DNA of 64,000 nt from Phyllobates terribilis (Eukaryota), in contig NW_027362764.1 in the NCBI RefSeq assembly GCF_046119375.1, forward strand, positions 804,574,001 to 804,638,000. Direction: 5' to 3'. The notes below the pieces were generated by a model. It worked only from the letters and a program-made list of their open reading frames with translations, ran no database searches and was not told the origin of the DNA. Shown here piece by piece: positions 1-60,736 of this stretch; position 1 is the first letter of the stretch, and each line of letters starts with the position of its first letter. A program made the translations under genes and the position numbers.

Positions 1-3000
1 GTGAGGAGCAGCTGTTGTGACGGGACATGGAGCTACAGGAGGCAGGTGAGGAGCAGCTCTTGTAGTGAGGGGACATGGAGCAACAGGACGCAGGTGAGGA
101 GCAGTTCTTGTAGTGACGGGACATGGAGCTACAGGAGGCAGGTGAGGAGCAGCTCTTATAGTGACGGGACATGGAGCTACAGGAGGCAGGTGAGGAGCAG
201 CTCTTGTGACAGGACATGGAGCTACAGGAGGCAGGTGAGGAGCAGCTCTTGTAGTGACGGAACATGGAGCTACAGGAGGTAGGTGAGGAGCGGCTCTTGT
301 AGTGACGGGACATGGAGCTACAGGAGGCAGGTGCGGAGCTGAACTTGTAGTGACGGGACATGGAGCAACGGGAGGCAGGTGAGGAGCAGATCTTGTAGTG
401 ACGGGACATGGAGCTACAGGAGGCAGGTGAGGAGCAGCTCTTGTAGTGACGGGACATGGAGCTACAGGAGGCAGGTGAGGAGGAGCTCTTGTAGTGACGG
501 GACATGGAGCTACAGGAGGCAGGTGAGGAGCAGCTCTTGTAGTGACGGGACATGAAGGTACAGGAGGCAGGTGTGGATCAGCTCTTGTAGTGACGGGACA
601 TGGAGCTACAGGAGGCAGGTGAGGAGCAGCTCTTGTAGTGAGGGGACATGGAGCTACAGGAGGCAGGTGAGGAGCAGCTCTTGTAGTGACGAGACATGGA
701 GCTACAGGAGGCAGGTGAGGAGCAGCTCTTGTAGTGACGGGACATGGAGCTACAGGAGGCAGGTGAGGAGCAGCTCTTGTAGTGACGAGACATGGAGCTA
801 CAGGAGGCAGGTGAGGAGCAGCTCTTGTAGTGACGGGACATGGAGCTACAGGACGCAGGTGAGGAGCAGCTCTTGTAGTGACGGTACATGGAGCTACAGG
901 AAGCAGGTGAGGAGCAGCTCTTGTAGTGACGGGACATGGAGCTACAGGAGGCAGGTGAGGAGCACCTCTTGTAGAGACGGGACATGGAGCTACAGGAGGC
1001 AGGTGAGGAGCAGCTCTTGTAGTGACGGGACATGGAGCTACAGGAGGCTGGTGAGGAGCAGCTCTTGTAGTGACAGGACATGGAGCTACAGGAGGCAGGT
1101 GAGGAGCAGCTCTTGTAGTGACGGGACATGGAGCTACAGGAGGCTGGTGAGGAGTAGCTCTTGTAGTGACGGGACATGGAGCTACAGGAGGCAGGTGAGG
1201 AGCAGCTCTTGTAGTGACGGGACATGGAGCTACAGGAGGCTGGTGAGGAGTAGCTCTTGTAGTGACAGGACATGGAGCTACAGGAGGCAGGTGAGGAGCA
1301 GCTCTTGTAGTGACGGGACATGGAACTACAGGAGGCAGGTGAGTAGCAGCTCTTGTAGTGACGGGACATGTAGCTACAGGAGGCAGGTGAGGAGCAGCTC
1401 ATGTAGTTACGGGACATGGAGCTACAGGAGGCAGGTGATTAGCGGCTCTTGTAGTAACGGGACATGGAGCTACAGGAGGCAGGTGAGGAGCTGCTCTTGT
1501 AGTGACAGGACATGGAGCTACAGGAGGCAGGTGAGGAGCAGCTCTTGTAGTGACGGGACATGGAGCTACAGAAGGCAGGTGAGGAGCAGCTCTTGTAGTG
1601 ACGGGTCATGGAGCTACAGGAGGCAGGTGAGGAGCTCTTGTAGTGACAGGACATGGAGCTACAGGAGGCAGGTGAGGAGCAGCTCTTGTAGTGACGGGAC
1701 ATGGAGCTACAGAAGGCAGGTGAGGAGCAGCTCTTGTAGTGACGGGACATGGAGCTACAGGAGGCAGGTGAGGAGCAGCTCTTGTAGTGAAGGGACATGG
1801 AGCTGCAGGAGGAAGGTGAGGAGCAGCTCTTGTAGTGACGGGACATGGAGCTATAGGAGGCAGGTGAGGAGCAGCTCTTGTGACGGGACACGGAGCTACA
1901 GGAGGCAGGTGATGAGCGGCTCTTGTAGTGACGGGACATGGAGCTTCAGGAGGCAGGTGAGGAGCAGCTTTTGTAGTGAGGGGACATGGAGCTACAGGAC
2001 GCAGGTGAGGAGCAGCTCTTGTAGTGACGGGACATGGAGCTACAGGAGGCAGGTGAGGAGCAGTTCTTGTAGTGACGGGACATGGAGCTACAGGAGGCAG
2101 GTAAGGAGCAGCTCTTGTGACGGGACATGAAGCTACAGGAGACAGGTGAGGGGCAGCTCTTGTAGTGAAGGAACATGGAGCTACAGGAGGTAGGTGAGGA
2201 GCGGCTCTTGTAGTGATGGGACATGGAGCTACAGGAGGCAGGTGAGGAGTAGATCTTGTAGTGACGGGACATGGAGCTACAGGAGGCATGTGAGGAGCAG
2301 ATCTTGTAGTGACGGGACATGGAGCTACAGGAGGCAGGTGAGGAGCAGCTCTTGTAGTGACGGGACATGGAGCTACAGGAGGCAGGTGAGGAGCAGCTCT
2401 TGTGACGGGACATGGAGCTACAGGAGGCAGGTGAGGAGCAGCTCTTGTAGTGACAGGACATGGAGCTACAGGAGGCAGGTGTGGAGCAGCTCTTGTAGTG
2501 ACGGGGCATGGAGCTGCAGGAGGCAGGTGATAAGCAGCTCTTGTAGTGACGGGACATGGAGCTGCAGGAGGAAGGTGAGGAGCAGCTCTTGTAGTGACGG
2601 GACATGGAGCTATAGGAGGCAGGTGAGGAACAGCTGTTGTGATGGGACATGGAGCTACAGGAGGCAGGTGAGGAGCAGCTCTTGTAGTGAGGGGACATGG
2701 AGCTACAGGACGCAGGTGAGGAGCAGCTCTTGTAGTGACGGGACATGGAGCTACAGGAGGCAGGTGAGGAGCAGCTCTTATAGTGACGGGACATGGAGCT
2801 ACAGGAGGCAGGTGAGGAGCAGCTCTTGTGACGGGACATGGAGCTACAGGAGGCAGGTGAGGAGCAGCTCTTGTAGTGACGGGACATGGAGCTACAGGAG
2901 GCAGGTGAGGAGCGGCTCTTGTAGTGACGGAACATGGAGCTACAGGAGGTAGGTGAGGAGCGGCTCTTGTAGTGACGGGACATGGAGCTACAGGAGGCAG

Positions 3001-6000
3001 GTGAGGAGCTGATCTTGTAGTGAAGGGACATGGAGCTACAGGAGGCAGGTGAGGAGCAGCTCTTGTAGTGACGGGACATGGAGCTGCAGGAGGCAGGTGA
3101 TGAGCAGCTCTTGTAGTGACGGGACATGGAGCTGCAGGAGGAAGGTGAGGAGCAGCTCTTGTAGTGACGGGACATGGAGCTATAGGAGGCAGGTGAGGAG
3201 CAGCTGTTGTGACGGGACATGGAGCTACAGGAGGCAGGTGAGGAGCAGCTCTTGTAGTGAGGGGACATGGAGCTACAGGAGGCAGGTGAGGAGCAGCTCT
3301 TATAGTGACGGGACATGGAGCTACAGGAGGCAGGTGAGGAGCAGCTCTTGTGACGGGACATGGAGCTACAGGAGGCAGGTGAGGAGCAGCTCTTGTAGTG
3401 ACGGAACATGGAGCTACAGGAGGTAGGTGAGGAGCTGAACTTGTAGTGACGGGACATGGAGCAACAGGAGGCAGGTGAGGAGCAGATCTTGTAGTGACGG
3501 GACATGGAGCTACAGGAGGCAGGTGAGGAGCAGCTCTTGTAGTGACGGGACATGGAGCTACAGGAGGCAGGTGAGGAGCAGCTCTTGTAGTGACGGGACA
3601 TGGAGCTACAGGAGGCAGGTGAGGAGCAGCTCTTGTAGTGACGGGACATGGAGCTACAGGAGGCAGGTGAGGAGCAGCTCTTGTAGTGACGGGACATGGA
3701 GCTACAGGAGGCAGGTGAGGAGCAGCTCTTGTAGTGAGGGGACATGGAGCTACAGGAGGCAGGTGAGGAGCGGCTCTTGTAGTGACGGGACATGGAGCTA
3801 CAGGAGGCAGGTGAGGAGCAGCTCTTGTAGTGACGAGACATGGAGCTACAGGAGGCAGGTGAGGAGCAGCTCTTGTAGTGACGGGACATGGAGCTACAGG
3901 AGGCAGGTGAGGAGCAGCTCTTGTAGTGACGAGACATGGAGCTACAGGAGGCAGGTGAGGAGCAGCTCTTGTAGTGACGGGACATGGAGCTACAGGAGGC
4001 AGGTGAGGAGCAGCTCTTGTAGTGACGGGACATGGAACTACAGGAGGCAGGTGAGTAGCAGCTCTTGTAGTGACGGGACATGTAGCTACAGGAGGCAGGT
4101 GAGGAGCAGCTCATGTAGTTACGGGACATGGAGCTACAGGAGGCAGGTGATTAGCGGCTCTTGTAGTAACGGGACATGGAGCTACAGGAGGCAGGTGAGG
4201 AGCTGCTCTTGTAGTGACAGGACATGGAGCTACAGGAGGCAGGTGAGGAGCAGCTCTTGTAGTGACGGGACATGGAGCTACAGAAGGCAGGTGAGGAGCA
4301 GCTCTTGTAGTGACGGGTCATGGAGCTACAGGAGGCAGGTGAGGAGCTCTTGTAGTGACAGGACATGGAGCTACAGGAGGCAGGTGAGGAGCAGCTCTTG
4401 TAGTGACGGGACATGGAGCTACAGAAGGCAGGTGAGGAGCAGCTCTTGTAGTGACGGGACATGGAGCTACAGGAGGCAGGTGAGGAGCAGCTCTTGTAGT
4501 GAAGGGACATGGAGCTGCAGGAGGAAGGTGAGGAGCAGCTCTTGTAGTGACGGGACATGGAGCTATAGGAGGCAGGTGAGGAGCAGCTCTTGTGACGGGA
4601 CACGGAGCTACAGGAGGCAGGTGATGAGCGGCTCTTGTAGTGACGGGACATGGAGCTTCAGGAGGCAGGTGAGGAGCAGCTTTTGTAGTGAGGGGACATG
4701 GAGCTACAGGACGCAGGTGAGGAGCAGCTCTTGTAGTGACGGGACATGGAGCTACAGGAGGCAGGTGAGGAGCAGTTCTTGTAGTGACGGGACATGGAGC
4801 TACAGGAGGCAGGTAAGGAGCAGCTCTTGTGACGGGACATGAAGCTACAGGAGACAGGTGAGGGGCAGCTCTTGTAGTGAAGGAACATGGAGCTACAGGA
4901 GGTAGGTGAGGAGCGGCTCTTGTAGTGATGGGACATGGAGCTACAGGAGGCAGGTGAGGAGTAGATCTTGTAGTGACGGGACATGGAGCTACAGGAGGCA
5001 TGTGAGGAGCAGATCTTGTAGTGACGGGACATGGAGCTACAGGAGGCAGGTGAGGAGCAGCTCTTGTAGTGACGGGACATGGAGCTACAGGAGGCAGGTG
5101 AGGAGCAGCTCTTGTGACGGGACATGGAGCTACAGGAGGCAGGTGAGGAGCAGCTCTTGTAGTGACAGGACATGGAGCTACAGGAGGCAGGTGTGGAGCA
5201 GCTCTTGTAGTGACGGGGCATGGAGCTGCAGGAGGCAGGTGATAAGCAGCTCTTGTAGTGACGGGACATGGAGCTGCAGGAGGAAGGTGAGGAGCAGCTC
5301 TTGTAGTGACGGGACATGGAGCTATAGGAGGCAGGTGAGGAACAGCTGTTGTGATGGGACATGGAGCTACAGGAGGCAGGTGAGGAGCAGCTCTTGTAGT
5401 GAGGGGACATGGAGCTACAGGACGCAGGTGAGGAGCAGCTCTTGTAGTGACGGGACATGGAGCTACAGGAGGCAGGTGAGGAGCAGCTCTTATAGTGACG
5501 GGACATGGAGCTACAGGAGGCAGGTGAGGAGCAGCTCTTGTGACGGGACATGGAGCTACAGGAGGCAGGTGAGGAGCAGCTCTTGTAGTGACGGGACATG
5601 GAGCTACAGGAGGCAGGTGAGGAGCGGCTCTTGTAGTGACAGAACATGGAGCTACAGGAGGTAGGTGAGGAGCGGCTCTTGTAGTGACGGGACATGGAGC
5701 TACAGGAGGCAGGTGAGGAGCTGATCTTGTAGTGAAGGGACATGGAGCTACAGGAGGCAGGTGAGGAGCAGCTCTTGTAGTGACGGGACATGGAGCTGCA
5801 GGAGGCAGGTGATGAGCAGCTCTTGTAGTGACGGGACATGGAGCTGCAGGAGGAAGGTGAGGAGCAGCTCTTGTAGTGACGGGACATGGAGCTATAGGAG
5901 GCAGTTGAGGAGCAGCTGTTGTGACGGGACATGGAGCTACAGGAGGCAGGTGAGGAGCAGCTCTTGTAGTGAGGGGACATGGAGCTACAGGAGGCAGGTG

Positions 6001-8737
6001 AGGAGCAGCTCTTATAGTGACGGGACATGGAGCTACAGGAGGCAGGTGAGGAGCAGCTCTTGTGACGGGACATGGAGCTACAGGAGGCAGGTGAGGAGCA
6101 GCTCTTGTAGTGACGGAACATGGAGCTACAGGAGGTAGGTGAGGAGCTGAACTTGTAGTGACGGGACATGGAGCAACAGGAGGCAGGTGAGGAGCAGATC
6201 TTGTAGTGACGGGACATGGAGCTACAGGAGGCAGGTGAGGAGCAGCTCTTGTAGTGACGGGACATGGAGCTACAGGAGGCAGGTGAGGAGCAGCTCTTGT
6301 AGTGACGGGACATGGAGCTACAGGAGGCAGGTGAGGAGCAGCTCTTGTAGTGACGGGACATGGAGCTACAGGAGGCAGGTGAGGAGCAGCTCTTGTAGTG
6401 ACGGGACATGGAGCTACAGGAGGCAGGTGAGGAGCAGCTCTTGTAGTGAGGGGACATGGAGCTACAGGAGGCAGGTGAGGAGCGGCTCTTGTAGTGACGG
6501 GACATGGAGCTACAGGAGGCAGGTGAGGAGCAGCTCTTGTAGTGACGAGACATGGAGCTACAGGAGGCAGGTGAGGAGCAGCTCTTGTAGTGACGGGACA
6601 TGGAGCTACAGGAGGCAGGTGAGGAGCAGCTCTTGTAGTGACGAGACATGGAGCTACAGGAGGCAGGTGAGGAGCAGCTCTTGTAGTGACGGGACATGGA
6701 GCTACAGGACGCAGGTGAGGAGCAGCTCTTGTAGTGACGGGACATGGAGCTACAGGAAGCAGGTGAGGAGCAGCTCTTGTAGTGACGGGACATGGAGCTA
6801 CAGGAGGCAGGTGAGGAGCACCTCTTGTAGTGACGGGACATGGAGCTACAGGACGCAGGTGAGGAGCAGCTCTTGTAGTGACGGGACATGGAGCTACAGG
6901 AGGCAGGTGAGGAACAGCTCTTGTAGTGACGGGACATGGAGCTACAGGAGGCAGGTGAGGAGCAGCTCTTGTAGTGACGAGACATGGAGCTACAGGAGGC
7001 AGGTGAGGAGCAGCTCTTGTAGTGACGGGACATGGAGCTACAGGAGGCAGGTGAGGAACAGCTCTTGTAGTGACGAGACATGGAGCTACAGGAGGCAGGT
7101 GAGGAGCGGCTCTTGTAGTGACGGAACATGGAGCTACAGGAGGTAGGTGAGGAACGGCTCTTGTAGTGACGGGACATGGAGCTACAGGAGGCAGGTGAGG
7201 AGCAGATCTTGTAGTGACGGGACATGGAGCTACAGGAGGCAGGTGAGGAGCAGCTCTTGTAGTGACGGGACATGGAGCTACAGGAGGCAGGTGAGGAGCA
7301 GCTCTTGTAGTGACGGGACATGGAGCTACAGGAGGCAGGTGAGGAGCACCTCTTGTAGTGACAGGACATGGAGCTACAGGAGGCAGGTGAGGAGCAGCTC
7401 TTGTAGTGACAGGACATGGAGCTGCAGGAGGCAGGGGAGGAGCGGCTCTTGTAGTGACGGGACATGGAGCTACAGGAGGCAGGTGAGGAGCAGCTCTTGT
7501 AGTGACGGGACATGGAGCTACAGGAGGCAGGTGAGGAGCAGCTCTTGTAGTGACGGGACATGGAGCTACAGGAGGCAGGTGAGGAGCGGCTCTTGTAGTG
7601 ACGGGACATGGAGCTACAGGAGGCAGGTGAGGAGCAGCTCTTGTAGTGACGGGACATGGAGCTGCAGGAAGAAGGTGAGGAGCAGCTCTTGTAGTGACGG
7701 GACTTGGAGCTACAGGAGGTAGGTGAGGAGCAGATCTTGTAGTGACGGGACATGGAGCTACAGGAGGTAGGCGAGGAGCGGCTCTTGTAGTGACGGGACA
7801 TGGAGCTACAGGAGGCAGGTGAGGAGCAGATCTTGTAGTGACGGGACATGGAGCTACAGGAGGCAGGTGAGGAGCGGATCTTGTAGTGACGGGACATGGA
7901 GCTACAGGAGGTAGGCGAGAAGCGGCTCTTGTAGTGACGGGACATGGAGCTACAGGAGGCAGGTGAGGAGCAGATCTTGTAGTGACGGGACATGGAGCTA
8001 CAGGAGGCAGGTGAGGAGCAGCTCTTGTAGTGACGGGACATGGAGCTATAGGAGGCAGGTGAGGAGCACCTCTTGTAGTGACAGGACATGGAGCTACAGG
8101 AGGCAGGTGAGGAGCGGCTCTTGTAGTGACGGGACATGGAGCTACAGGAGGCAGGTGAGGAGCAGCTCTTGTAGTGACGGTACATGGAGCTACAGGAGGC
8201 AGGTGAGGAGCAGCTCTTGTAGTGACGGGACATGGAGCTACAGGAGGCAGGTGAGGAGCAGATCTTGTAGTGATGGGACATGGAGCTACAGGAGGCAGGT
8301 GAGGAGCAGATCTTGTAGTGACGGGACATGGAGCTACAGGAGGCAGGTGAGGAGCAGCTCTTGTAGTGACGGGACATGGAGCTACAGGAGGCAGGTGAGG
8401 AGCAGCTCTTGTAGTGACGGGACATGGAGCTACAGGAGGAAGGTGAGGAGCACCTCTTGTAGTGACAGGACATGGAGCTACAGGAGGCAGGTGAGGAGCA
8501 CCTCTTGTAGTGACGGGACATGGAGCTACAGGAGGCAGGTGAGGAGCAGCTCTTGTAGTGACGGGACATGGAGCTACAGGAGGCAGGTGAGGAGCGGCTT
8601 TTGTAGTGACGGGACATGGAGCTACAGGAGGCAGGTGAGGAGCATCTCTTGTAGTGAAGGGACATGGAGCTACAGGAGGCAGGTGAGGAGCAGCTCTTGT
8701 AGTGACGGGACATGGAGCTACAGGAGGCAGGTGAGGA
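1..8737. repeat. 48-bp tandem satellite (45-bp variants), ~180 units, runs off the window start
   Basis: Unit GTGAGGAGCAGCTCTTGTAGTGACGGGACATGGAGCTACAGGAGGCAG; 16-aa periodicity in all ORF-track frames; ends 9 nt from the H2B stem-loop. Confidence 0.98.
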
Positions 8738-8746
8738 CGGGGTGGT

Positions 8747-8762
8747 GGCTCTTAGAAGAGCC
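8747..8762 (-). promoter_or_regulatory. Histone 3' stem-loop of H2B
   Basis: Minus strand CCAAA-GGCTCT-TCTA-AGAGCC-ACCAC, 33 nt after the H2B stop. Confidence 0.95.
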
Positions 8763-8795: not shown

Positions 8796-9197
<402 letters not shown>

Positions 9198-9242
9198 TCA
9201 CAAGTGAGAAGAACAATAATTCTGCTCCTCCCAGAGCGGCAG

Positions 9243-9380
9243 TATTTATATTCCGGCCATGCAAATGAGCCCTGCTGTCAGATCACTATTCCACTGGGTG
9301 ACAAAGTCATGTGACCAAAAATGAAATAAGCACCGCCCACTGCAGCTCATTGGTGGCTCCAAAAGTCTTGTTTCCATTGG
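9243..9380 (-). promoter_or_regulatory. H2B promoter: TATA, octamer, two CCAAT boxes
   Basis: Minus strand TATAAATA (9243-9250), ATTTGCAT octamer (9259-9266, H2B subtype element), CCAAT at 9349-9353 and 9376-9380. Confidence 0.88.
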
Positions 9381-9399
9381 CCGTATATCTCCATAGAGT

Positions 9400-9800
9400 G
9401 CTGCAAACCCGGTGTAATGCTGTATAGCTCCATATACTTCAGTATAATAATAATTTTTATTTATATAGTGCCAACATATTCCACAGCACTTTACCCCCAT
9501 GTAATGCAGTATTCCCCACTTACTGCTGTATACCTCCATGTAATAATGTATCCTTCAATGTACCCCCATATAGTGCTGTATACGGTGACAGCTGTTTGTG
9601 CCTGTCCTGTACGTCCATCAATACAATGCTGTATACACCCATGTAGTGCTGTATAATCTACAGATGGTCTTGTAAACCCACATATACTCCCCATACAATT
9701 CTATAAACCCCATACAATGCTCTACACTTAATATAATGCTGAAAAGCCTTTATAGTACAGTATATGTCCCCAGTGCTGTATAACCTCTATGTAGTACATA
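9400..9800. repeat. Degenerate low-complexity repeat ((A/T)GTGCTGTATA motif)
   Basis: Recurring atagtgctgtata-like motifs; similar tract at about 56820-56920. Confidence 0.5.
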
Positions 9801-10407: not shown

Positions 10408-10980
<573 letters not shown>

Positions 10981-11692: not shown

Positions 11693-13199
11693 TCACCGAC
11701 AAATATCTTGCTTGTAAATCTCATCATATATGTTTATAGGAGAAGTGGCATTATATTTCGCAGGCCTGTGATGTTTAATCTTGTGGGTTTTCTTGCATAG
11801 TCTCTTAATAGCAAATATACTAATCCTGGCAACTATATACACTAGTAATATCAAAATTCCTATTTGTAGAATACCTTGTAGGATATCCATTAGCCATCCA
11901 CCTATACCCTTGAACCAATTGACAGGATTAAGAAATGAGAAAGTGTCGCTCCACCAGGAATCTTTGTTGACATGATGTTCTTGGAGCCACGCTTCCCTCA
12001 TTTCTCTAACTATCTCTATCTTGGTATTTACCTGGAAATTTCCTGCAGGGTCTATGTAGTGGCAACAGGTAGGGCCTATTATCTGACACATCCCACCCTC
12101 TCTAGCAGTCAAGTAATCTAGTACTATGGTGTGTTGGTTAGTAACTGCAATTAGTTGTTTCTGTACAATATTAGATGTATTGAGAACGTCAAGAATCTGG
12201 AAGATCTGGTCATCTAGATAATCAGTCGCTTCTACTAACTTATCCCACATTTGCATTATTAATGGGTAAATGAATAAAACACTAAAAAATTTGTTAGCCA
12301 CCCCCATTTCTACAAGATGTGGTTTACCATTTGGTCAGGGTTTGTCGTCTGCAGCTCGTCTGTACAGTGTGTGTAGAGGGATTGCTTTAATATCTACTCT
12401 TGTGTGAGGTACTATAAAAGTAGAAGGTGTCAGAAAGGCCAGTGTGCAAACTCCTGTGAAATTGTTGAGTAACCACTTGTAAGCCTGATGTCCACATACA
12501 ATATATAATGTATCTGGTGATCCAACAACAGTGTTGTTGAACAAACTAGCAATCCATTTAGATAACAAGGTGGTGCTTAATTTTTCCATAATTCTTTCCT
12601 GATACTGAGTGTCATTTGAGGTAAAACCTGATATTAGATTTTGCAAGGTGACATTTACACAGTGAAGCTTAGGATTGAGAGTGGCATCAACCGCTATACA
12701 CTGCGTAGTAGTGGTAGCAGATCCATTACACTCTGAATAGTCAGCTATAGAGAAAGTAAACCCTCTGGATTTTATCTGAAGACAGCTGCAAGAGGTAAAG
12801 TTCGGATAACAGGAGAGGTTGACACGACTGGTCGCCCAAGGCATTTCAGTCTGACTTAGAGGAGGACCGCCATGGCTCAGTCACCCAAGCTGCTACAGTT
12901 AGACTTACAGCCTTATTTTTCTTTGTTGTTCTTAATCTAATAGGAAAAGTGTGGTTACTTAAGTAAAACATTTCATTCAAAGTCACTGGAATAGCTAAAT
13001 AAGGCATAGTATTGGAGGATATTGGACTATGGGTGCATATCCAACAGTTCTTAGGACGGTCATTAGAGTTCATGTCTTGGAGTAAGACTTGGTGATGCTT
13101 TATCAGTTTGTTATCCCAGTTCTCTTTAAGTACTTCATGGAGAGTTAGGGCAAATGGTACGGTTGCTATCACCATAGTCCAAACAAACAGGGTCATCAT
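11693..13199 (-). pseudogene. env: ERV env (gamma-type SU/TM), one frameshift and one stop
   Basis: Signal peptide, CWIC motif, ISD-like TNQHTIVLDYLTAREGGMC, CX6CC (CQIIGPTCC), TM helix; split over ORFs 12846-13199, 12335-12844 and 11693-12307. Confidence 0.88.
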
Positions 13200-15450
13200 C
13201 TTTGCTGCTGCTGGGGTTCAAAACCTTTTTACAATGGCTGGCGTGGATCCAAGTGTCCTTGCCTTGAAGCTTGACTGAAGTGGCAGTGGTTAACAGCACT
13301 TGGAATGGTTCACTGTATCTGGGCTCCAGTGGTCTCCTCATATGTCTCTTTACCACGACCCAGTCTCTTGGTACCAAAATGTGAGTGCCGCTGAGGCAAT
13401 TGGGGTCTGGGATGGAGGAAAGAACACGATTATGAGTAACAGTCAAATGTTTATGCAACTCCAGAACATATTCAGTGAGAGAACCATAGGAGGCTGCAGC
13501 TGCTGTGGGAAATACAACCCTGTCTTAGGGACACTACCAAACAGTATTTCATATGGGGACAGCTTCTCCCTCCCCCTTGGGGTGGTCCTCACTGAATACA
13601 ATGCTATGGGCAAACAATCTACCCAGGACAAGTGTGTTTCTTCCATGCACTTTTGAATTTTTAGCTTCAAGGTACCATTGAGGTGTTCCACCTTCCCACT
13701 ACTTTGTGGATGATAGGGAACATGGAAAGCCTGTTCTATCCCAAGAGTGACCATGATTTGTTTCATTAGTTCCCCAGTAAAGTGAGTTCCTCTGTCACTT
13801 TCTATAGTTTCGGGCACCCCATATCTACAAACCACCTCACTGAGCAATTTTTTTAGCAGTAGTTTTTGTGTTTGCTTTAGTCACCGCCCAAGCTTCTGGC
13901 CACCCAGAGAAAAGGTCAATGCTTACCAGGACGTATTCATAATTACCCACCTTAGGTAGCTGTATGTTGTCCATCTGCAGTCTCTGAAATGGGTAATCTG
14001 GTTTTGGTGTGCATTTTCGTGGGACTCGAATAGGCCTACCAGGGTTATGTTTTGCACAAACTAGACATTCTTGAACATACTTTGCAGCCGTATTCGGAAA
14101 CCCTGGGGCACACCAATTTTGTAGCACCACTGCACACATAACACCCTTTGAGTTATGCACCGGAGAATGTGCAAGGGCAGCCATCATGGGGAACAGGCAG
14201 CGTGGAAGGCAAATACGCTTGTTTACCTGCCATACCCCTGACACTGACTGTACAGCGCCCGCTTTGACCCATGCATTCTGCTCGTGAGGGGGAGCCTGGG
14301 TCTGGAAGACCTGCAGTAGCTCGAGGTCCACGGCCACTGGGACCGGTGCAGAGGATGTCTCCTTATTTGAAAGGGGGCTTCCTGCACTCCCTGACTCTGA
14401 GTCTCATGGGGTTCCCGCACTTGCGATAGCCAGTATCTTTGTCAGAGGTAATCATGCTGCTTCCTTAGCCGCCAGGTCGGCCAAAGCATTCCCTAATGCA
14501 AGGGGAGTTTGTTCCCGAGTGTGTGCTGACACTTTGACTATGGCTGCCCTTCGGGGAAGGGTGAGTGCTGTGAGAAGCTGCTCTACCGCTTGTGCACTCC
14601 TTATATGTTTGCCAGCAGAGGTCAAGAAATTAAGGCTTCGCCAAATGGCACCAAAGTCATGTGCAACACCATAAGCATATTGCGAGTCAGAAAATACATT
14701 AATTTCTTTACCTTTTCCCAGATTACACGCTGCAGCGAGTGCTTTAAGCTCTGCTTCTTCCGCAGAGCAGCTGGAGGGGAGTGGTTCTTGTATCACTGCC
14801 TTACCATTGTGGACTACTGCATACCCGGTGATGAATCGTCCTTGTTCACTGTCCCAAGCTCTGGAACCATCTACAAAATACTAAGCAGAGGGGTTAGTGA
14901 GTGGCACATCAGTAATATTTGCCAAGCCCTTTATTTCCATCAATGCCTGACAATCATGTTCATGTGCCATATCAAACTGAGCTTCCTCATCTGCTAATTT
15001 GAAAAACAGGGGCAAATCTTGGCTCATGGTCTCTCCCTCTTCCACATCCTGATACTTTCCTCCCTTTTCTAAATCCACTGGAAGTAGTGTAGCTGGATTT
15101 AGAACATTACAGCGTTTGATAGTTATATGGGGAGGTGTAAGGAGTGAGACTTCATATTTTGTCAACCTTGATGCTGAGAGGTGGCGGGTCTGAGCCTGTT
15201 GAAGTATTTCAGATGCACCATGAGGAACTTGAAGTGTGAGAGGGCTTCCTAACACTATGTCCTCTGTCTTTTTAACAAGTTCTGAAGCAGCTGCCACAGC
15301 TCTAACACAAGTAGGAGAACCCATAATGACTGGATCAAGGGTTACAGAGTAATACCCTAGAGGGCACTGCCTACCACCATGTTCTTGGGTAAGGACACCA
15401 GACGCATGTCCAGCCTGTTCGTGGCAGTACAAAGTAAAAAACTTGTCATA
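13135..15450 (-). pseudogene. pol: ERV pol remnant: RT connection, RNase H, integrase
   Basis: YCHEQAGHASGVLTQ; EEAELKAL...FSDSQYAYG; HSPVH..CLVC; ESDRGTHF...HPQSSGKVEHLN; several frameshifts. Confidence 0.88.
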
Positions 15451-16229
15451 AGTAAGGGTTCACTGCCTTTCTGCAGAATGAAAGAAACTAGATCATCCCA
15501 TGTGGCCCGATATGCCTCAAGAACACCCTGGAGGTGCATTCTGAATATTAAGGGGGTTTTTCGGGGATCTGGGAGCTGTGTAGCGAGGGCAATAAGTTCA
15601 CTGGGGGACCAAGGCCGATATGTTTCTATTGGCCATACTTGGGGGGGATCGTGTACTGTAACATTATCAACCATCCTAGGAGGTTGAAACTGTACATGAC
15701 TAGTGGTCCTCATAGGGAACAGAGGCACCCTGGGTGTTGTCCCTGGGTGTGAAGATCCACAGGACCTACAACAATTAACCCCAGAGGAATTCTGATGACC
15801 ACAATGTCTGGAAGTCCATCCCATTGACCCAACATAAGGCGGTGGTGCTGAAGGGGATGCAGAATTTACATCAGGTACAGAGACTACAGGGGTCTGAGAG
15901 TTTTTCAAACTATCATAGTTTACATAGACAGTTCCATGCCTGGTTTCCTCTGATTTATGTTCACTCATTGAGAGACGTTTTGCTACTTCTAACCACATCC
16001 TAGCCTGTTCTAGTTTGTTTTTATCTTTCAACCATCCTTCCCAATTGCAGATATATTTCTCCCATTCCTTCTCTTCCAAATTCCCCCACTTTCCCGTACC
16101 AAATTTCCTCAATACTATTTCACATCCTTCTACCGCTTCTTTTCCTTTTAGTCTCTCCGCTATCTCACATGCTGGAACTGGGGCCTCGCCCTTTAGGTTA
16201 GTCAATTCCTTACTGTTGCCAGTCCCCAT
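15450..16229 (-). pseudogene. gag: ERV gag (MA, late domain, start of CA), truncated
   Basis: MGTGNS myristoylation start; PSAPPPY late domain; YRPWSPSEL...YRATWDDL p30-like CA start; fused out of frame to the pol connection domain. Left boundary approximate. Confidence 0.82.
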
Positions 16230-17462
16230 GACTGCAACCACTGTGCCAGAGTTACCGCAGAGTTACCGCAGAACTCTCTTCAGCACACCTAGAGCCTCTC
16301 AGACTCTAAATTTGATCCCGTCCCAGTCTCCTCTGATCCTCGAAAGACGGATCTGATCCTGTCCCAGTCTCCCCTGAGCCTCGGAAGACAGATCTTTAAG
16401 GAAGTACTAACACAGATTTTCCAGCCCTGTGAGCTAGGGAGATTCTTACACACAACCAAACAAATAACAATACCAAGCCTACTGCTCCACCTACTATTGC
16501 AATTATTTCTGCATGATCATATAACATTTCCCAGTTCAGAGGTTTTCCTTCTACACCTTGTAAAGGCACTACGTGACAACTATATCTGCAATAAGAGTTA
16601 CCTTTTATACTATATGTTTCCCAGTCTGGGTATACAGGCTAAGCAAGAACTTCAGCTACTATGATTTTCCCTCTCTTGAGATTACACAAAACAGAACACA
16701 GACACTGAGGACGATTCTGATTCATCAAAAATGACTTAACAATACGTCAATCATTCAATCCACACTGCACAATCGCTGATATTAATCCCCCTGCTGTATT
16801 CGGGCTAAAAACTGCATTCAGTTACCCCTTTCTTGAGGGTGCCCTTATCAATTTACAGGGGAATTCAATACCCTCAGAGTACTACCTTACAATGAAGGAT
16901 TCCTCTGTTATAGGCAATCACACTTCCCTGATCCTCTTACGGACCGATTTTCCTCTCCACCACATGTGAAGGAACACACCTAACGGGATCCCTTATCAAG
17001 CAGAGACCGTAGTCCCTTATTGGTCAATCAAAAATCATTCAGTCCCACATTCAAGGATCCTCATAGTTTACAATATCATACCAGACATTTATGACGTAGA
17101 CAAAACAAACAACATAAAACAATCCCCTGACTCCTGAAATATACAGAAGAACTGCGGAGGTGCCTAATCCCAACATGCTGGGCAAGGTTGGTTACTCGTC
17201 ACTTCATTCAATTATCATTCAACCGTCATTCAATGGTCAATTATACATCTAAAAACCACATTGAAACATATAAGACAACAAAATCAGTCACAGGCAAGGG
17301 TTCAAAAATGATTGGCTTGTTAGGACCACCAATTACCCGTCCTGGAGCCCTCTAGGTAGTACTGAATTAGTAGTAATACAAGGGATTACTTACCGCGGAT
17401 TTCATTCAGTAATTCCCAGAGAGATCCTTGTTGATGGGTCCAGAGGAGGTCCGGTTATGACA

Positions 17463-24257: not shown

Positions 24258-26114
24258 AACAGATAGCTGGCAGGCGCTTCCTGGTAATGCTGGCTGGTGA
24301 GCACGGCAGGTAACAGGCAGGTGCTTCCACGTAATACAGGCTGGTGAGCACGGCAGGTAACGGGCAGGTGCTTCCAGGTAATGCAGGCTGGTGAGCACGG
24401 CAGGTAACAGGCGGGTGCTTACAGGTAATGCAGGCTGGTGAGCACGGCAGGTAACAGGCGGGTGCTTCCTGGTAATGCAGCCTGGCACGGCAGGTAACAG
24501 GCGGGTGGTTACAGGTAATGCAGGCTGGCACAGCAGGTAACAGGCGGGTGCTTCCAGGTAAGCAGGCGGGCAGAGCCCATAGTCAGACTGGCGGACAGGA
24601 CTGTAGACAGACTGTCGGGCTGGAGAGTAGTCAGGCTGGCGGACTGGACTGAAGATTAGACTGGCGGACAGGATTGACTTGCAGAGGACCTAAGGGCTGA
24701 AGCAAAGAAAGTATCAAAAAGCAACAACCTTGCACGGGCACCTCCATATTGGAGGAGGTGCTTTCTATAGTGAAAGTCCTCCGGTCATTGACCGGGGACT
24801 TTTTAGGACGGCACGTGCGGCCCCTTTAAGAGGGAGGGAGCACGCACCCTAACCACAGAGCCTGGGAAGCTGTGTGCACCAGCAGCAGCTGCAGGGAGGC
24901 CGGAAGATGCCAGAGCAGGACCGCTGCGCTAAGGGGGACGGCATCTCAGCCTGGCAGGGGGCAGAGATGCCGATGCTACAGTACCCCTCCCTTTACACCC
25001 CCTCTTTTTCAAGCCAGCAAGAAATTCTTTAAGGAGAAGAGGGGCATGGATGTTCTCCCTGGGTTCCCAAGACCTCTCCTCCGGGCCAAAATGTTCTCTA
25101 CCTCATAGACGTCCTCAGCGGAGACTGGAGCTGGGGAGGTACCTGGATCGTCAGAAAAAGAATTAAGAACAACTGGTTTGAGGAGAGATACGTGGAAGGA
25201 GTTGGGAATCCGTAAGGTGGCCGGGAGTTTGAGCTTGTAAGCCACGCGATTGAATTGCTTGAGAACCTCAAACGGGCCGATGAACCGCGGACCCAACTTA
25301 TACGATGGTATTTTGAGCCGAACGTGTTTGGAGGAGAGCCAGACCCTGTCTCCCGGACGGAATTGAGGTGGATCCAGACGTCTCTTATCAGCATGTCTCT
25401 TCATCCGCTCAGAGGATTGAAGAAGTGCGGATCTAGTGTCTTCCCAAATAGTAGAAAATTCGCTGACCAGAGACTCCGCGGCAGGATTGTCCACAGAAGC
25501 GGAGACGGGAAAAGGAATCCGGGGTGTTGTCCGTAGACCACAAAGAACGGGGATTTGGAAGAAGACTCACTCTCATGGTTGTTATAGGAGAACTCTGCCC
25601 ATGGTAGGAGCTCAACCCAGTGGTTATGGTGAGTGTTGACGAAATGCTGGAGAAAGCTGGTAAGGACCTGGTTGATACGTTCCACTTGACCATTGGACTG
25701 AGGATGATAAGCAGAGGAGAAATCCAAGGAGACATCCAGCAGCTTACACGTAGCTCTCCAGAAGCACGCAGTGAACTGGACCCCTCGATCAGACACAATG
25801 TGGAGGGGTGGGCCGTGGAGATGAAAGATGTGATGGATGAAGTCCTTAGCCAGCACAGATCCGGACGGGAGACCAGGCAGAGGGATGAAGTGGGCCATTT
25901 TAGAAAAGCGGTCAGCGACCAACCAAATGACTGTACAACCGGCAGAAACAGGAAGATCAGTAATAAAGTCCATAGCAATGTGTGGCCACGGAGCGGAAGG
26001 TACGGGAAGAGGCAGGAGACGGCCGGCTGGAAGACGTCTGGGAACTTTGTTACGGGCACAGGAGGAACAAGCCGTGACTAAATTCGCAACGTCCTTGCGT
26101 AGAGAAGGCCACCA
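24258..26114 (-). mobile_element. Gypsy (chromovirus-type) 3' remnant: integrase, start of chromodomain, PPT, partial 3' LTR
   Basis: WWPSLRKDV..C..CARNK, MDFITDLP, SDRGVQF, HPQSNGQVER, GPF, VYEVENIL; PPT 24981-25004; LTR starts TGTAGCATC at 24980. Confidence 0.85.
24272..24565. repeat. 47-bp VNTR inside the LTR
   Basis: GCAGGTGCTTCCAGGTAATGCAGGCTGGTGAGCACGGCAGGTAACAG, about 6 units. Confidence 0.85.
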
Positions 26115-27057
26115 GTATCAGGACGTACAGCAGTATGTGGGGGTATCAGGACGTACAGCAGTATGTGGGGGTATCAGGACGTACAGCACTATGTGGGGGT
26201 ATCAGGACGTACAGCACTATGTGGGGGTATCAGGACGTACAGCAGTATGTGGGGGTATCAGGACGTACAGCAGTATGTGGGGGTATCAGGACGTACAGCA
26301 CTATGTGGGGGTATCAGGACATACAGCAGTATGTGGGGATATCAGGACGTACAGCAGTATGTGGGTGTATCAGGTCGTACAGCACTATGTGAGTGTATCA
26401 GGACGTACAGCACTATGTGGGGGTATCAGGACGTACAGCACTATGTGGGGGTATCAGGACGTATAGCAGTATGTGGGGGTATCAGGACGTACAGCAGTAT
26501 GTGGAGGTATCAGGACGTACAGCACTATGTGAGTGTATCAGGACGTACAGCACTATGTGGGGGTATCAGGACGTACAGCACTATGTGGAGGTATCAGGTC
26601 GTACAGCAGTATGTGGGTGTATCAGGTCGTACAGCACTATGTGAGTGTATCAGGACATACAGCACTATGTGGGGGTATCAGGACGTACAGCACTATGTGG
26701 GTGTATCAGGTCGTACAGCACTATGTGGGGGTATCAGGACGTACAGCAGTATGTGGGTGTATCAGGTCGTACAGCACTATGTGAGTGTATCAGGACGTAC
26801 AGCACTATGTGGGGGTATCAGGACGTACAGCACTATGTGGGGGTATCAGGACGTACAGCACTATGTGGGGGTATCAGGTCGTACAGCAGTATGTGGGGGT
26901 ATCAGGACGTACAGCAGTATGTGGGGGTATCAGGACGTACAGCAGTATGTGGGGGTATCAGGACGTACAGCACTATGTGGGGGTATCAGGACGTACAGCA
27001 CTATGTGGGGGTATCAGGACGTACAGCACTATGTGGGGGTATCAGGACGTACAGCAG
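26115..27057. repeat. 28-bp tandem satellite, ~34 units
   Basis: GTATCAGGACGTACAGCA(G/C)TATGTGGGG. Confidence 0.97.
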
Positions 27058-27864
27058 ATCGTCCCTCATATAATCTATGATAATAGATGAAGGTGAACGC
27101 TTCTGTGATCGGGGGATGTGATCTGCCGACTACACCGGACACCTCTCCTCCCCGGGGCCGGAGCGGTTCTCCCGCTCATTACACGGAGATGACACGACCC
27201 CTGTATACAGAGATTCCGCTCCATGTACAATGACCGGTAATAACCGCACGAGAACCGCTCGTCTTGACACCGCGTGAAGAGAAAGAGCGGGAGAAGCGGA
27301 GAGTGACTGAGCGGGAAGCTAAAACTCACAAAAGCTCCGGGCATCAGCCAATCAGCACCAAGCATCGAGCTGTAGCTCCGCCCTTCACCCAACACTAAAC
27401 CTGCACAGCTGATGGAAACGCGGAGCCCCAAGGAGCAGCTGTAGAAAATGCCGGCAGAGCATATCCCCCTGTAGATGGAGGAGAGGAGCGGTTAATAAAT
27501 GTCCCCGGAGTCCTGAGGATGATTGTGCGGAGGAAGCAGCAGATGAGCGCTGACAGCTCTATTCTATACAGACACGATCACACCATGTCTACATGCGGCT
27601 TCTACAGCATGAGCCGCCGATGTCACTGTATGTCTATATACCCGGCACACGGAGCTGTACAGCGGCTCCTCGATCAGTCGAAATCATTGGTGTTTTAATT
27701 CCAACATAGAAAAGCCTCACACTCCCCTTTCACTATTACAGACGCGGGTTACAAGCGGTGATTGATCAGGATGTAAGAAATAAGATTTCTTCAGGACATC
27801 GGCCCCTTCCCTCCAATAACTAATGACCCTGAAGCAGCTCCCTGTACACACTATAATATCTGCC

Positions 27865-28274
27865 GGGAACAAGGCGGTGGCACTGATCATACAGCTCTGC
27901 AGGGACAAGGTGGTGACACTGACCATACAGCTCTGCAGGGACAAGGTGGTGACACTGACCATACAGCTCTGCAGGGACAAGGTGGTGACATTGACCATAC
28001 AGCTCTGCAGGGACAAGGTGATGGCACGGATCATACAGCTCTGCAGGGACAAGGTGATGGCACTGATCATACAGCTCTGCAGGGACAAGGTGATGGCACT
28101 GATCATACAGCTCTGCAGGGACAAGGTGATGGCACTGATCATACAGCTCTCCAGGGACAAGGTGGTGACACCGATCATACAGCTCTGCAGGGACAAGGTG
28201 GTGACACCGATCATACAGCTCTGCAGGGACAAGGTGGTGACACCGATCATACAGCTCTGCAGGGACAAGGTGAT
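27865..28274 (-). repeat. 36-bp tandem array beginning at the H1 stem-loop; 11 HDE-like copies
   Basis: Plus-strand ACAGCTCT at 27891, 27927 ... 28251 (36-nt steps); 12-aa periodicity in the ORF track. Confidence 0.95.
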
Positions 28275-28290
28275 GGCTCTGATAAGAGCC
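28275..28290 (-). promoter_or_regulatory. Histone 3' stem-loop of H1 (loop TATC)
   Basis: CACAAA-GGCTCT-TATC-AGAGCC-ATCAC. Confidence 0.92.
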
Positions 28291-32003: not shown

Positions 32004-32492
<489 letters not shown>

Positions 32493-33159: not shown

Positions 33160-33474
<315 letters not shown>

Positions 33475-36156: not shown

Positions 36157-39100
36157 CTAAGAGGATCCTCCGGATCCCCTAGGACCAGGCTTATCAGGAA
36201 ATCTCCTGTGAAACGCTCTGATAAGTCTGGACGCGGAAACATCATCTGACCTCACCCAAGAGTTATCCTCGGGTCCGAAACCTTTCCAGGCCACAAGATA
36301 CTGCAAACTACCTCTATACCGTCTAGAGTTAAGGATGCGAGAAATTTCATATTCCCCGTCCTCCACCACCGGAGGAACAGAGGCAGAGGCGTCACCATCC
36401 GACACAACAGCTTTTTTTAACAGAGAGACATGAAATACCGGATTAATTCTCCAGGAGGTAGGAACCTCCAACCTAACAGCAGATTGGTTAACAACCTGAA
36501 GCACCTTAAAGGGCCCTACAAACTTGGGACCCAATTTCTTAGAAGGAATCCTCAACCGCAGATTCCTAGAGGACAACCAAACCATGTCACCAACAGCGAA
36601 CAAAACCTCCTGTCGTTTCCTATCAAAGTAGTCTTTAGATTTTCTGTTGGCCTCCTGAAGATTACCACGCACATCCGTCCAAACTCTCTCCAAATCACCG
36701 GAAAAATTCTCCTCCTCAGGCACGGCAGATCCCAACTTGGAGAACGACCTAAACGACGGATGTCTCCCAGAACAACAAAAAAAAGGCGAACAACCAGCAG
36801 AAGAAGATGTATGATTGTTCAGAGCAAATTCAGCAAGTGGCAGAAACTCAGACCACCCCTCTTGATTGTCTGCCACAAAACAACGCAAGAACTGCTCAAC
36901 ATCCTGGTTTTTCCTTTCTGTCTGGCCATTAGATTCAGGATGATATCCGGACGAGAACGACAAATGAACTCCCAACCTGTCACAAAAGGCACGCCAAAAA
37001 TGAGCCACGAACTGAGGACCCCTATCAGAAACAATGTCAGTAGGAACGCCATGAAGTCTGACAATTTCCTTGACAAAGGCCTTAGCGAGAGTTTTAGCGC
37101 AGGGCAGTTTGACGAAGGGAACCAAGTGACACATCTTGCTAAAACGGTCCACGACCACCCAGATGACAGTAAAACCCTCAGAGGGGGGAAGGTCAGTTAT
37201 AAAGTCCATAGCCAAATGTGTCCAAGGAGCACTGGGAACCTCCAAAGGACAAAGCAACCCCGCAGCAGGAGTATGTGAGGACTTAGATCTAGCACATATA
37301 GTACATTGACGCACCCACTTAATGACCTCCTTCTGCCATCCAGGCCACCAAAAACTGCGACCCACCAGTCTCTTGGTCTCAGAGATTCCGGGATGACCTG
37401 CCAACCGAGACTCGTGACACTCAACAAACAAATCTCTCCTAAAGGTCCCAGGCACAAACAACCTCCCATGAGGAGTGTTTGATGGGGCATTCTCCTGTGC
37501 TTTAAGAATCTCATCTTCCAAAACGGAGTCCAAAGCAGCTATCACAACACCTTCTTGTAAAATGTTCTCCTCTTTCTCAGCACCGACTATGGGAGAAAAA
37601 CTGCGAGACAAGGCATCCGCCTTAACATTCTTAGTACCAGGGATGTAAGTAACGGAGAAATTAAACCGCGAGAAAAACAGTGCCCACCTAGCCTGACGGG
37701 CATTCAGGCGCTTGGCAGCATCAAGATATATCAGATTTTTATGATCCGTAAGAACCTGAACGGGAAATTCCGCACCTTCCAAGAAGTGGCGCCAGTGTTC
37801 AAATGCGAGTTTAATAGCCAATAATTCCCGATTACCAATATCGTAATTCAGTTCAGTCTCCGAAAGTTTTTTTGAAAAAAAGGCACAGGGATGTAATCCA
37901 TCCCCGTTATCCTGAGACAATACTGCGCCAACCCCCACAGAGGAAGCATCAACCTCAACCAAAAACGGCTTAGTCACATCAGGCTGCATAAGGATGGGAG
38001 CAGAGGTGAACCTCTCCTTGATATACACAAAAGCTTCAATGGCCTCAGAAGACCACTGAACCGCATCAGCACCTTTCCTGGTGAGATCGGTCAGAGGTTT
38101 CACAATACTAGAAAATTTTTTTATGAATTTTCTGTAATAATTGGCGAAACCTAAAAACCTCTGTATCGATTTCAAACCAATAGGCCTAGGCCATTCCTGC
38201 ACAGCTTGAACTTTCACCGGGTCCATCTCCAAACCTTCGCTGGAGATAATGTAGCCCAAAAAACTAATTCTCTGTACAGCGAACTCACATTTCTCCAGCT
38301 TAGCAAAAAGCGAATTGTCCATTAATAACTGTAATACCTCACGTACGCTCCGCCAATGAGATTCCAGATCCGGCGAATAAATCAAAATGTCATCCAAATA
38401 CACAACCACATTTTTGCCGATCAAAGGTCTAAGGATGTCATTAATCAGATTCTGAAAAAATGCAGGAGCATTAGTAAGACCAAAAGGCATAACCAGATTC
38501 TCAAAATGACCCACAGGAGTGTTAAAAGCAGTCTTCCATTCATCACCCTCCTTCATGCGCAACAGATTGTATGCCCCCTTAAGGTCAATTTTAGAGAACC
38601 ACTTGGCCCCCATTAACTGGTTAAACAGATCAGGAATCAATGGCAGTGGGTAAGGATTGCGTACAGTAATTTTGTTAATCTCACGAAAATCCAGACAAGG
38701 ACGTAAACCGCCGTCCTTTTTTTTTACAAAAAAAAATCCAACCGCCACAGGAGACTTAGAGGGCCTAATGTGACCGGCGGCCAAACTTGTCTGTATGTAT
38801 TCCTCCAAAGCCTTCCTCTCAGGAATAGTAAGGTTAAATAAACGACTTTTAGGAAGAGTCGCTCCAGGGACAAATTCAATAGAACAATCATAGTCTCTAT
38901 GGGGAGGCAAAACCTGCGATTCCTTCTCAGAAAAAACTCTCCAAAAATCCTGAATAGGAACAGGCAATTCTCCCCTATCCAAAGCTGCAATACGCCCGTT
39001 ACAACACTTGTCATAACATTTATGGCTCCAGGATTTAATTTCACTGGTAGACCAATCCAGTACAGGATTGTGAAATTTTAACCAGGGCAATCCCAATATT

Positions 39101-41558: not shown

Positions 41559-42657
41559 GATGGAACAGAAAATTCTTTCCTTAGAGAATTTGCAGGCTGG
41601 ACTTACAGTTATGTTCTGCTACCAGAGCTAAGGAAAGAGAGGAGATCTGTCCCTACGATAGAACTCAGCTGAATCCCTACGATGTAACAGGGAACCTGAT
41701 CCTGCGATCAGACCTGCTAAAGTCCTAAGCTAGTCTGTACGGAGACCTATAGATGTGGGGAAGGAATCTCTACAAGTACTAAGGACTGGGAGGAAAATGG
41801 GACACCTCCTAACAGAAATAGTAGCAGACAGACGAACAAACAAAATATATAGAACATAGAGGTCCGTAGACCAAGCAAACTAACAGAGTTAGATACAGAG
41901 CACAGGCTAGCTAGAAAGTAGATATACAATGAAGTCCAGCAAAGCCAGAAGGGCGGAGCAGGATTAAATAGGCCAACAAGGTCATGTGACCAGCAAAGGA
42001 AAAAACCTAAGAGCAAGGTTCTAACATAAGCATCCTGGTGGCCCAGTTAATCGGGGCAGCCCAAAGGGAGGTAAAGTCCTGGCCACCTGGGAGGAAGAGG
42101 ACTGTCAGAGAAATACTAGCCCGGCTGAAAGACACATTTGATACCCGCACCTCAGCCGAAATAAAGCTCAGATTTTACGGGTGCAAACAACGGGCACATG
42201 AAAGTATAAGAGACTATGCTCTAAACCTACAAGAGGCCATAAAACAGGCAGACCCTGACAGCGTGGGAAATGAAGACAAGCTGTTGACCGAACAATTTAT
42301 TGAGGGTCTACTGTGCAATGCCCACCGAACCCAGTTGCGGGCAATGGCCTTACAGGACCCTGACCTGGACTTTGCACAGTTCAAGGACAGAGCCATCCGG
42401 GTGCTCCGAGAATTGGCACCAGGTGGCGCTGTGACCGACAGGCGCCCTGCTATCACTTATCACCAGGACGCGGCGCCCTTGTCTGCAGGGCCTGTGGGAG
42501 CTGATGCGCAGGCTTTGAACAATGACCCGGCAACAGACCTGCACCATCAGGTCCAAGAGCTGACTAAGAGTGTTGCCGCGCTAACCAGAACTGTGCAGTC
42601 TTTACAGGTCTCTTCTCCAGAAAAGATCCAGCTGGCATCCGGACCGGAGGACGTCCC

Positions 42658-57856: not shown

Positions 57857-58171
<315 letters not shown>

Positions 58172-59985: not shown

Positions 59986-60558
59986 GTTTGTGACTCCTCA
60001 TTCATCACCTCAGTCCTCTGATGAAGCCAGCCTTGGACAAAACATGTCGGGGAGGCTTGGAGTGAACTCTTGATCAGCTGTGATGTTCTTGCAACTGACA
60101 TCTATAATTGTCGTTAGAAAAGCTATCCTAGCTAGTGGACTGCAGACAGCAATCTAGGTAGCAGATATATTCGCTTTAGGAGAGCGATATCCCATAGAGG
60201 AATCCCAAAGAAACGCTACACAGCAATATCACCTGGGTTATTTTAATCCTTGTTAAAAATGAGTGAAGTTTTAATCACATTCTGTCTATAGTCGGGTCTA
60301 TAACTTTTGGGTATGACTTTCTAGTTCTCACACGTTACTCTGTCCTTTTACACTCCTACTATTCTTTCACACTTCCCAATGCTTTCCCCTCACTTCTTCC
60401 CCTGTGTTACCTTCATACACCTCCCCCCATATTGTTTCTCACTTCCACCAATAAAGCCCCCTATGCCTCCCCCTTTCATAAGGTCCTCACTTTTTCCTTC
60501 CCCCCATATCCTCTCCCCCGAGATCAGCGGCGCCGGCTCTTGTGGGGACGGTGTGGGT

Positions 60559-60574
60559 GGCTCTTAGAAGAGCC
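60559..60574 (-). promoter_or_regulatory. Histone 3' stem-loop of H2A, HDE-like ACAAGAGCCG downstream
   Basis: CCAAA-GGCTCT-TCTA-AGAGCC-ACCCA. Confidence 0.93.
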
Positions 60575-60610
60575 TTTGGTTGTGTGGATTGAGGAGATCG
60601 GCTGCAGCGC

Positions 60611-60736
60611 TCACTTGCTTTTCTTGCTGCTCTCGGTCTTCTTGGGCAGCAGCACGGCCTGGATGTTGGGCAGGACGCCCCCCTGGGTGATGGTCACCCC
60701 ACCCATAAGCCTGTTCAGCTCCTCGTCATTGCGAAC
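60611..60736 (-). pseudogene. H2A: Histone H2A 3' fragment (5' two-thirds and promoter lost)
   Basis: [41 protein letters not shown]; joined to mid-LTR sequence. Confidence 0.92.

Follow-up and report, generated by a model that had tools for sequence, protein, structure and literature searches.

A 48-bp satellite probably derived from the 3' flank of a histone H2B gene, including its U7-binding element, in the frog Phyllobates terribilis

Background

Satellites lying beside amphibian histone clusters have long been known from lampbrush chromosome work in newts, and they are the closest described counterpart of the element reported here, a 48-bp satellite that sits directly 3' of a histone H2B gene, in sense orientation, in the genome of the frog Phyllobates terribilis. 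The stretch analysed (hereafter the window) comprises 64,000 nt (NCBI RefSeq assembly GCF_046119375.1, contig NW_027362764.1, positions 804,574,001 to 804,638,000). The unit of newt Satellite 1 is ~220 bp long and, to our knowledge, it has not been described as derived from a histone downstream element (HDE), the U7-binding processing signal located downstream of the histone stem-loop. Read-through from histone genes into satellite DNA, which a first-pass annotation of the window had invoked as a precedent, is indeed documented on the lampbrush loops of the newt Notophthalmus (Diaz et al. 1981 and Gall et al. 1981, as cited in PMC5615363, where references 226-230 deal with the subject). The frog locus resembles this system in that an amphibian histone cluster is directly followed by a long satellite in a very large genome, with read-through as the obvious route to any transcription. 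In contrast to Satellite 1, the frog unit spans 48 bp and bears the processing signal itself.

A second precedent, for the action of U7 small nuclear RNA away from histone 3' ends, is found in human HERV1/LTR12 elements, which contain HDE-like motifs that are bound by U7, with an effect on transcription exerted through NF-Y (PMC11417402). Like LTR12, the H2B satellite is a repeated non-histone sequence that matches the U7 5' arm almost perfectly, but the LTR12 motifs are dispersed in retroviral long terminal repeats, whereas the satellite is a tandem array that apparently descends from a histone flank. Searches of the full-text literature returned no paper describing an HDE-derived satellite.

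The reading that we consider probable is that the satellite originated in the sequence flanking a replication-dependent H2B gene on its 3' side and now evolves as neutral satellite DNA. A stretch of ~48 bp beginning a few bases after the stem-loop, with the HDE included, would have been tandemly duplicated and would then have grown to at least 183 copies through slippage and unequal exchange; since the gene lies on the stem-loop side, this expansion would have been directed away from it. What would be new with respect to the newt work, judged by the literature searched, is that the repeated unit is the histone RNA-processing signal itself. If this origin is true, a defined functional element seeds satellites repeatedly and independently, for H1 and H2B with different units, and the 3' end of S-phase histone genes is a hotspot for tandem duplication. 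The seeding of satellites by histone processing signals would be a modestly novel aspect of genome biology, with the H2B locus as a further instance.

Results and discussion

The array and its junction with H2B

All histone genes in the window lie on the minus strand, and the satellite is described here in the same, histone-sense orientation. Tandem Repeats Finder (TRF) reports a single array at window positions 1-8737, with a period of 48, 183.1 copies and 93% matches, in good agreement with the ~180 copies over 8.7 kb of the first-pass annotation. Anchored segmentation and column counts on the minus strand resolve this array (1..8735) into 182 full units, of which 165 measure 48 bp and 17 measure 45 bp, and one partial unit. 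The array extends past the start of the window, and its length of at least 8.7 kb is hence a minimum. The consensus unit runs from CTCACCTGCC to AAGAGCTGCTC and includes CCCGTCACTACAAGAGCTGCTCC, and AAGAGCUG recurs from unit to unit. The HDE-like motif AAGAGCTG is counted 120 times, against 3.6 expected; it is exact in 117 of the 182 full units, reads AAGAGCCG in 20, carries one other mismatch in 36 and is further degraded in the remaining 9.

The gene that precedes the satellite has a coding sequence at 8796..9176 (minus strand) that is open wherever it can be read, positions 8939-9075 being masked with N. Direct reading of the region upstream (9189..9400, minus) reveals an octamer, ATTTGCAT (9259-9266, minus), a TATA-like box and CCAAT boxes, which we take to be H2B promoter elements. 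The 3' stem-loop, GGCTCTTCTAAGAGCC followed by ACC (8744..8762, minus), was located by pattern search and is matched by the Rfam Histone3 model with a score of 26.6 bits, which falls short of the gathering score. An H2A fragment has an identical stem-loop at 60556-60574, and the eight bases upstream are likewise identical. The array edge lies 8 nt from the ACC; in the first-pass annotation the array was seen to start at the H2B stem-loop.

The intervening flank, ACCCCGTC (8736..8743, minus, by direct reading), separates the ACC from the first full unit. Its CCCGTC (8736-8741) is common to the H2B flank ACCACCCCGTC and to the unit, which confirms the overlap noted in the first pass. Within the unit, CCCGTC continues into ACTACAAGAGCTG. 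At the junction, on the other hand, the stem-loop and ACC are followed on the sense strand by ACCCCGTC, which gives way at once to CTCACCTGCC, where the next unit begins; the 16 nt ACTACAAGAGCTGCTC that follow CCCGTC in every other unit, and with them the HDE-like motif, are absent. A 16-nt deletion between TC and TC, with this microhomology on either side, has probably removed the motif from the gene-proximal unit. As a result, the first actual AAGAGCTG downstream of H2B (8691..8698, minus) starts 48 nt after the last base of the stem and not at the 17 nt originally proposed, a distance in register that would describe a hypothetical ancestral state, different from the present sequence. Pairing with U7 was scored here and below against the human and mouse 5' arm printed in PMC7026596, which may differ from the frog's own arm. 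By this measure the real first 40 nt of the H2B flank pair with the mammalian-type arm at -8.6 kcal/mol, at the level of shuffled sequences (-7.2 +/- 2.0). Taken together, the missing 16 nt, the distance of the first motif and the shuffle-level pairing of the flank show that an HDE at working distance is lacking from this H2B, whose processing would then be poor or aberrant.

Origin of the unit

Evidence for a histone origin of the unit comes from the 3' flank of the H2A fragment. This flank, CCGTCCCCACAAGAGC (60536..60551, minus), is identical to CCGTCACTACAAGAGC of the unit at 14 of 16 positions, and it lies at the same distance from the stem when the CCCGTC of the unit is laid on that of the H2B flank. 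The local alignment is significant against shuffles (p 0.0015), which puts a figure on the earlier remark that the two sequences are nearly the same. The distances between stem and HDE-like motif given in the first pass (16 nt for H1, 17 for H3, 17 for H4 and 18 for H2A) were all reproduced on recount.

A parallel case is provided by the H1 gene of the same window, where an array of 11.8 copies of a 36-bp unit (27859..28283, minus) starts inside the flank of the H1 stem-loop. Nearly every unit of this array contains AGAGCTGTA; its first unit is intact, with the motif in register 16 nt after the stem, and its last unit degenerates into unique sequence. Both arrays thus start at a stem-loop flank, carry an HDE core in each unit, run in the same orientation and show no sign of selection on the motif. 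They differ in the gene that they follow, in units that are unrelated apart from the AGAGCTG core, and in their first unit, which is intact in the H1 array whereas that of the H2B array has lost the motif. The alignment of the H2B and H1 units is not significant (p 0.12), its best local segment being again the HDE part, and homology between the non-HDE half of the H2B unit and the H1 unit was accordingly rejected.

The position of the two arrays can also be evaluated against chance. The pattern search finds six stem-loops in the window (H2B, H3a, H1, H3b, H4a and the H2A fragment), and Rfam finds the same six. An array edge falls within 13 nt of two of these six stem-loops, a coincidence with P about 3e-4 in a window where 22 tandem arrays make up 24% of all bases. 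On this evidence we regard the H2B 3' flank, with the HDE in it, as the likely source of the unit, as the first-pass annotation had put forward; the flank would be the ancestor and the satellite its derivative.

The alternative to this origin is that an unrelated satellite, arisen elsewhere or from non-histone sequence, was joined to H2B by recombination and that its AAGAGCTG is coincidental. Several features of the locus point this way. Flank and unit share no more than 6 nt where they meet, and the first unit is incomplete, its motif having been skipped, so that descent from the H2B flank rests on the H2A comparison and on the analogy with H1; these two features weigh directly against the origin that we favour. 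Moreover, with close to a quarter of the window in tandem arrays, arrays beside genes are common here, the H2B and H1 units do not align beyond chance, and for ~30 nt of the unit none of the histone flanks in the window offers a counterpart. Those ~30 nt are presumably old H2B-specific downstream sequence. A coincidental motif is nonetheless difficult to reconcile with the match to an H2A flank that stands in the same register behind an identical stem-loop, with a U7 pairing energy that is itself significant against shuffles (p 0.0015), with an H1 array that looks like the product of the same process with its first unit still intact, or with the joint position of the array edges. We therefore consider an unrelated satellite improbable.

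Two suggestions may be made as to why arrays should nucleate at histone 3' ends: polymerase pausing combined with conflict between transcription and replication in S-phase genes, or the stalling of replication forks at the palindrome of the stem-loop.

U7 pairing and the fate of the motif

In the first-pass annotation the unit was credited with pairing to the U7 5' arm at 11 of 12 positions. This holds for the mammalian RNA, as CUACAAGAGCUG is complementary at 11 of 12 positions to CAGCUCUUUUAG of human and mouse U7 (PMC7026596). The consensus unit is predicted to pair with this arm, which may not be that of the frog, at -15.4 kcal/mol, as compared to -7.2 +/- 2.0 for shuffles (p 0.0015) and to -10.5 (H3), -11.8 (H2A), -14.0 (H1) and -14.6 kcal/mol (H4) for the genuine HDE flanks in the window. 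The unit is like a functional HDE in its purine core, AAGAG followed by CUG, which is complementary to the human and mouse U7 5' arm, and in a predicted duplex strength equal to that of the genuine HDEs nearby. The potential for U7 binding can be taken as real provided that the frog arm is the same as that of human and mouse, of which only the UCUUU box is stated to be universally conserved (PMC5054213). No U7 gene was found in the window, either at the Rfam gathering threshold or at E values up to 1.

The unit differs from a functional HDE in its setting. A working HDE lies ~10-20 nt after a single stem-loop, whereas here there are ~180 copies without a stem-loop, the nearest of them 48 nt from the only one; a placement ~10-20 nt downstream of stem-loop and cleavage site is thus found neither for the first motif nor for those of the other units. 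The motif also fails to behave as a conserved element. The two most variable of the 48 columns of the unit are 42 and 44, corresponding to the G and the T of AAGAGCTG, and the mean variability of the 8-nt motif window is 0.054, as opposed to 0.030 for the unit as a whole. Only 4 of the 48 cyclic windows are more variable, and the excess persists when the duplicated block described below is removed and when only distinct units are counted. Substitution per site in the motif is 2.5 times that in the rest of the unit. Hence, no purifying selection on the purine core is detected across the array, the motif window ranking among the 5 most variable of 48. The damage is also unevenly distributed, with the motif intact in 7 of 20 gene-proximal units versus 72 of 105 units further out (p 0.01), even though overall divergence is no higher in the proximal units. 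Mutation at an AID-type AGCT hotspot was considered as a source of the variable motif core, but the near-invariance of the unit's other AGCT, the second one (columns 17-20), led to its rejection.

These results bear on the role that the first-pass annotation had assigned to the array, in which RNA reading through from H2B would serve as a back-up cleavage and termination trap, as a scaffold for the histone locus body or as a sponge for U7 small nuclear ribonucleoprotein (snRNP); such RNA would carry ~150 U7-competent sites. Such a role would draw on a consensus whose pairing with a mammalian-type arm equals or exceeds that of the genuine HDEs, on the sense orientation of the array directly 3' of a gene with a normal-looking promoter, and on the lack of an HDE at working distance, which makes read-through likely. 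Strong U7 duplexes can be cleaved without SLBP, at a position that tracks the HDE (PMC7026596), the passage of transcription from histone genes into satellite has its newt oocyte precedent (in the references of PMC5615363), and U7 does act on HDE-like motifs outside histone genes, as in human LTR12 (PMC11417402). On the other hand, the two most variable columns fall inside the motif, and the commonest variants, AAGATCTG (-8.7 kcal/mol) and AAGAGCCG (-11.0 kcal/mol), pair more weakly; the damage is greatest in the proximal units, where back-up cleavage would matter most, the very first motif being lost; in the predicted fold of the sense RNA the motif core is taken up in a duplex with the second AGCU of the adjacent unit; and the surrounding genes are decaying. 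We thus regard a functional U7 array at this locus as quite improbable, and the scaffold, sponge or termination role finds no support in a highly variable motif whose most damaged copies lie next to a gene surrounded by largely defective neighbours.

Some caution is nevertheless required before the array is declared free of function, and the points that weigh against our reading of neutral evolution deserve to be set out together. The potential for binding remains high, with 154 of the 182 units pairing with the human and mouse arm at least as strongly as the weakest genuine HDE of the window. Counted on the column table, distinct alleles per site come to about 1.4 in the motif and about 1.05 elsewhere in the unit, which is not a clear difference. 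Because the units are not independent and variants spread by amplification, the excess of variability has to be read as no purifying selection, rather than as selection against the motif. Finally, the high redundancy of the array leaves each of its units under weak selection, so that the missing conservation of individual units is compatible with a function at the level of the array. On balance, the evidence at this locus favours no function, disfavouring the U7 array for this particular copy, and the satellite appears to have no required role.

A bolder variant would have the histone processing signal repeatedly seeding satellites behind H1 and H2B, with read-through RNA carrying hundreds of U7-competent sites that concentrate or titrate U7 snRNP around the histone genes or bring run-away histone transcription to cleavage and termination; the excess of broken motifs near the gene would then reflect a tuned binding load, instead of neutral decay. 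We consider this very doubtful. Whatever its present role, the array constitutes a natural test substrate for the reach of the U7 snRNP from the stem-loop, and for whether many HDEs on one RNA recruit or soak up U7.

Dynamics of the array

The array displays the hallmarks of satellite DNA, namely a long head-to-tail succession of a single unit, variants that spread in blocks, length variants and an internal segmental duplication. The 45-bp units lack the three bases immediately before the motif and form a recurring pattern along the array. Two adjacent blocks of 2,712 bp, each of 57 units (1248-3959, units 100-156, and 3960-6671, units 43-99, both minus strand), are 99.85% identical, with 4 differences, and would result either from a very recent unequal exchange, as a segmental duplication, or from a duplication in the assembly. 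In the history that we propose, these features would be the outcome of later neutral evolution, with blockwise variants, 45-bp length variants, a recent duplication of 57 units and a motif that decays at least as fast as the rest.

The near-identity of the two blocks lends itself to a different explanation, in which the array itself is genuine, whereas long-read assembly has gone wrong over its length, over the 2,712-bp duplicate and over the 16 nt missing at the junction. Two blocks that lie next to each other and differ at only 4 positions could well be such an error, and the public short-read contig sets of the same organism offer no independent check, as they contain 0.07-0.10 of the words sampled from the array, a share expected for collapsed repeats. 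The variant structure across the whole array and the 45-bp variants, however, look biological, and a 16-nt deletion is atypical of consensus error, which makes a partial artefact highly improbable. In RNA runs of the same organism, 0.05 of the sampled words of the array are found; the shares for the runs overall (0.05-0.25) are compatible with the conserved coding part of H2B plus collapsed repeats.

The satellite appears to be confined to its array within the window, the remaining 55 kb containing no match to a 24-mer of the unit even when up to 4 mismatches are allowed. A 25-mer of the unit gave 0 matches in a metagenome scan. The unit is free of stop codons and the open frames of the satellite are hence a by-product; two large searches (a search for homologous proteins and a whole-library HMMER search, which returned low-complexity matches only) found no related protein, and a protein-coding role is not supported. 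The best HMMER match by identity, P0007 (64%), lies in an unrelated AT-rich 54-bp repeat beside Calx-beta exons. An internal sub-repeat of the unit, hinted at by TRF periods of 21 and 24, was dropped at only 53-66% matches. The unit does contain two AGCT palindromes, on account of which hairpins are predicted for RNA of either strand, one per unit junction, with z scores of -2.3 (sense) and -4.3 (antisense). The sense hairpin is predicted to bury the core of the HDE-like motif.

The surrounding histone cluster

The histone genes around the array carry numerous lesions. The H4a copy (33160-33474, minus) is a pseudogene, in which four clustered substitutions (GTCTTCCTG to GTTTAAATG) create a stop in mid-gene, with stem-loop and flank intact. 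A second copy, H4b (57760-58171, minus), has an open frame, but it reads SGCGKGG and RKAVTAM where H4a has SGRGKGG and RKTVTAM, in an otherwise invariant protein, and relative to H4a a clean 23-nt deletion has taken out its entire 3' stem-loop, leaving the HDE-like flank in place. Of H2A there is only a 3' fragment (60534-60740, minus), with approximately the last 40 codons and the stem-loop, the upstream part being replaced by unrelated repeat-like DNA. The two H3 genes, H3a (10408-10818, minus) and H3b (32004-32489, minus), differ in REITQDF versus REIAQDF in a normally invariant protein, and the N-terminus of H3b is altered by a non-histone extension in place of its first residues. For the H1 protein, the only exact record is that of NCBI assembly GCA_046119375.1. 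The histone cluster around the array is decaying, and an H2B copy without an in-register HDE fits such relaxed constraint.

A series of further arrays, with units of 47 bp, 24 bp and 28 bp and integrase fragments between the last two, is present twice in the window (24269-27056 and 61582-64000), ~37.3 kb apart, which implies a long tandem-repeat organization for the histone cluster as a whole. The spacers between the histone genes are filled with long open frames from mobile elements, at 36157-39789, 42038-46904, 53518-55188 and 11693-16241; judged by eye from the translations, they correspond to a Gypsy-type Gag-Pol of 1,210 aa, another retroelement that is in pieces, a hAT-like transposase of 556 aa and fragments of an endogenous retrovirus that resemble env and pol.

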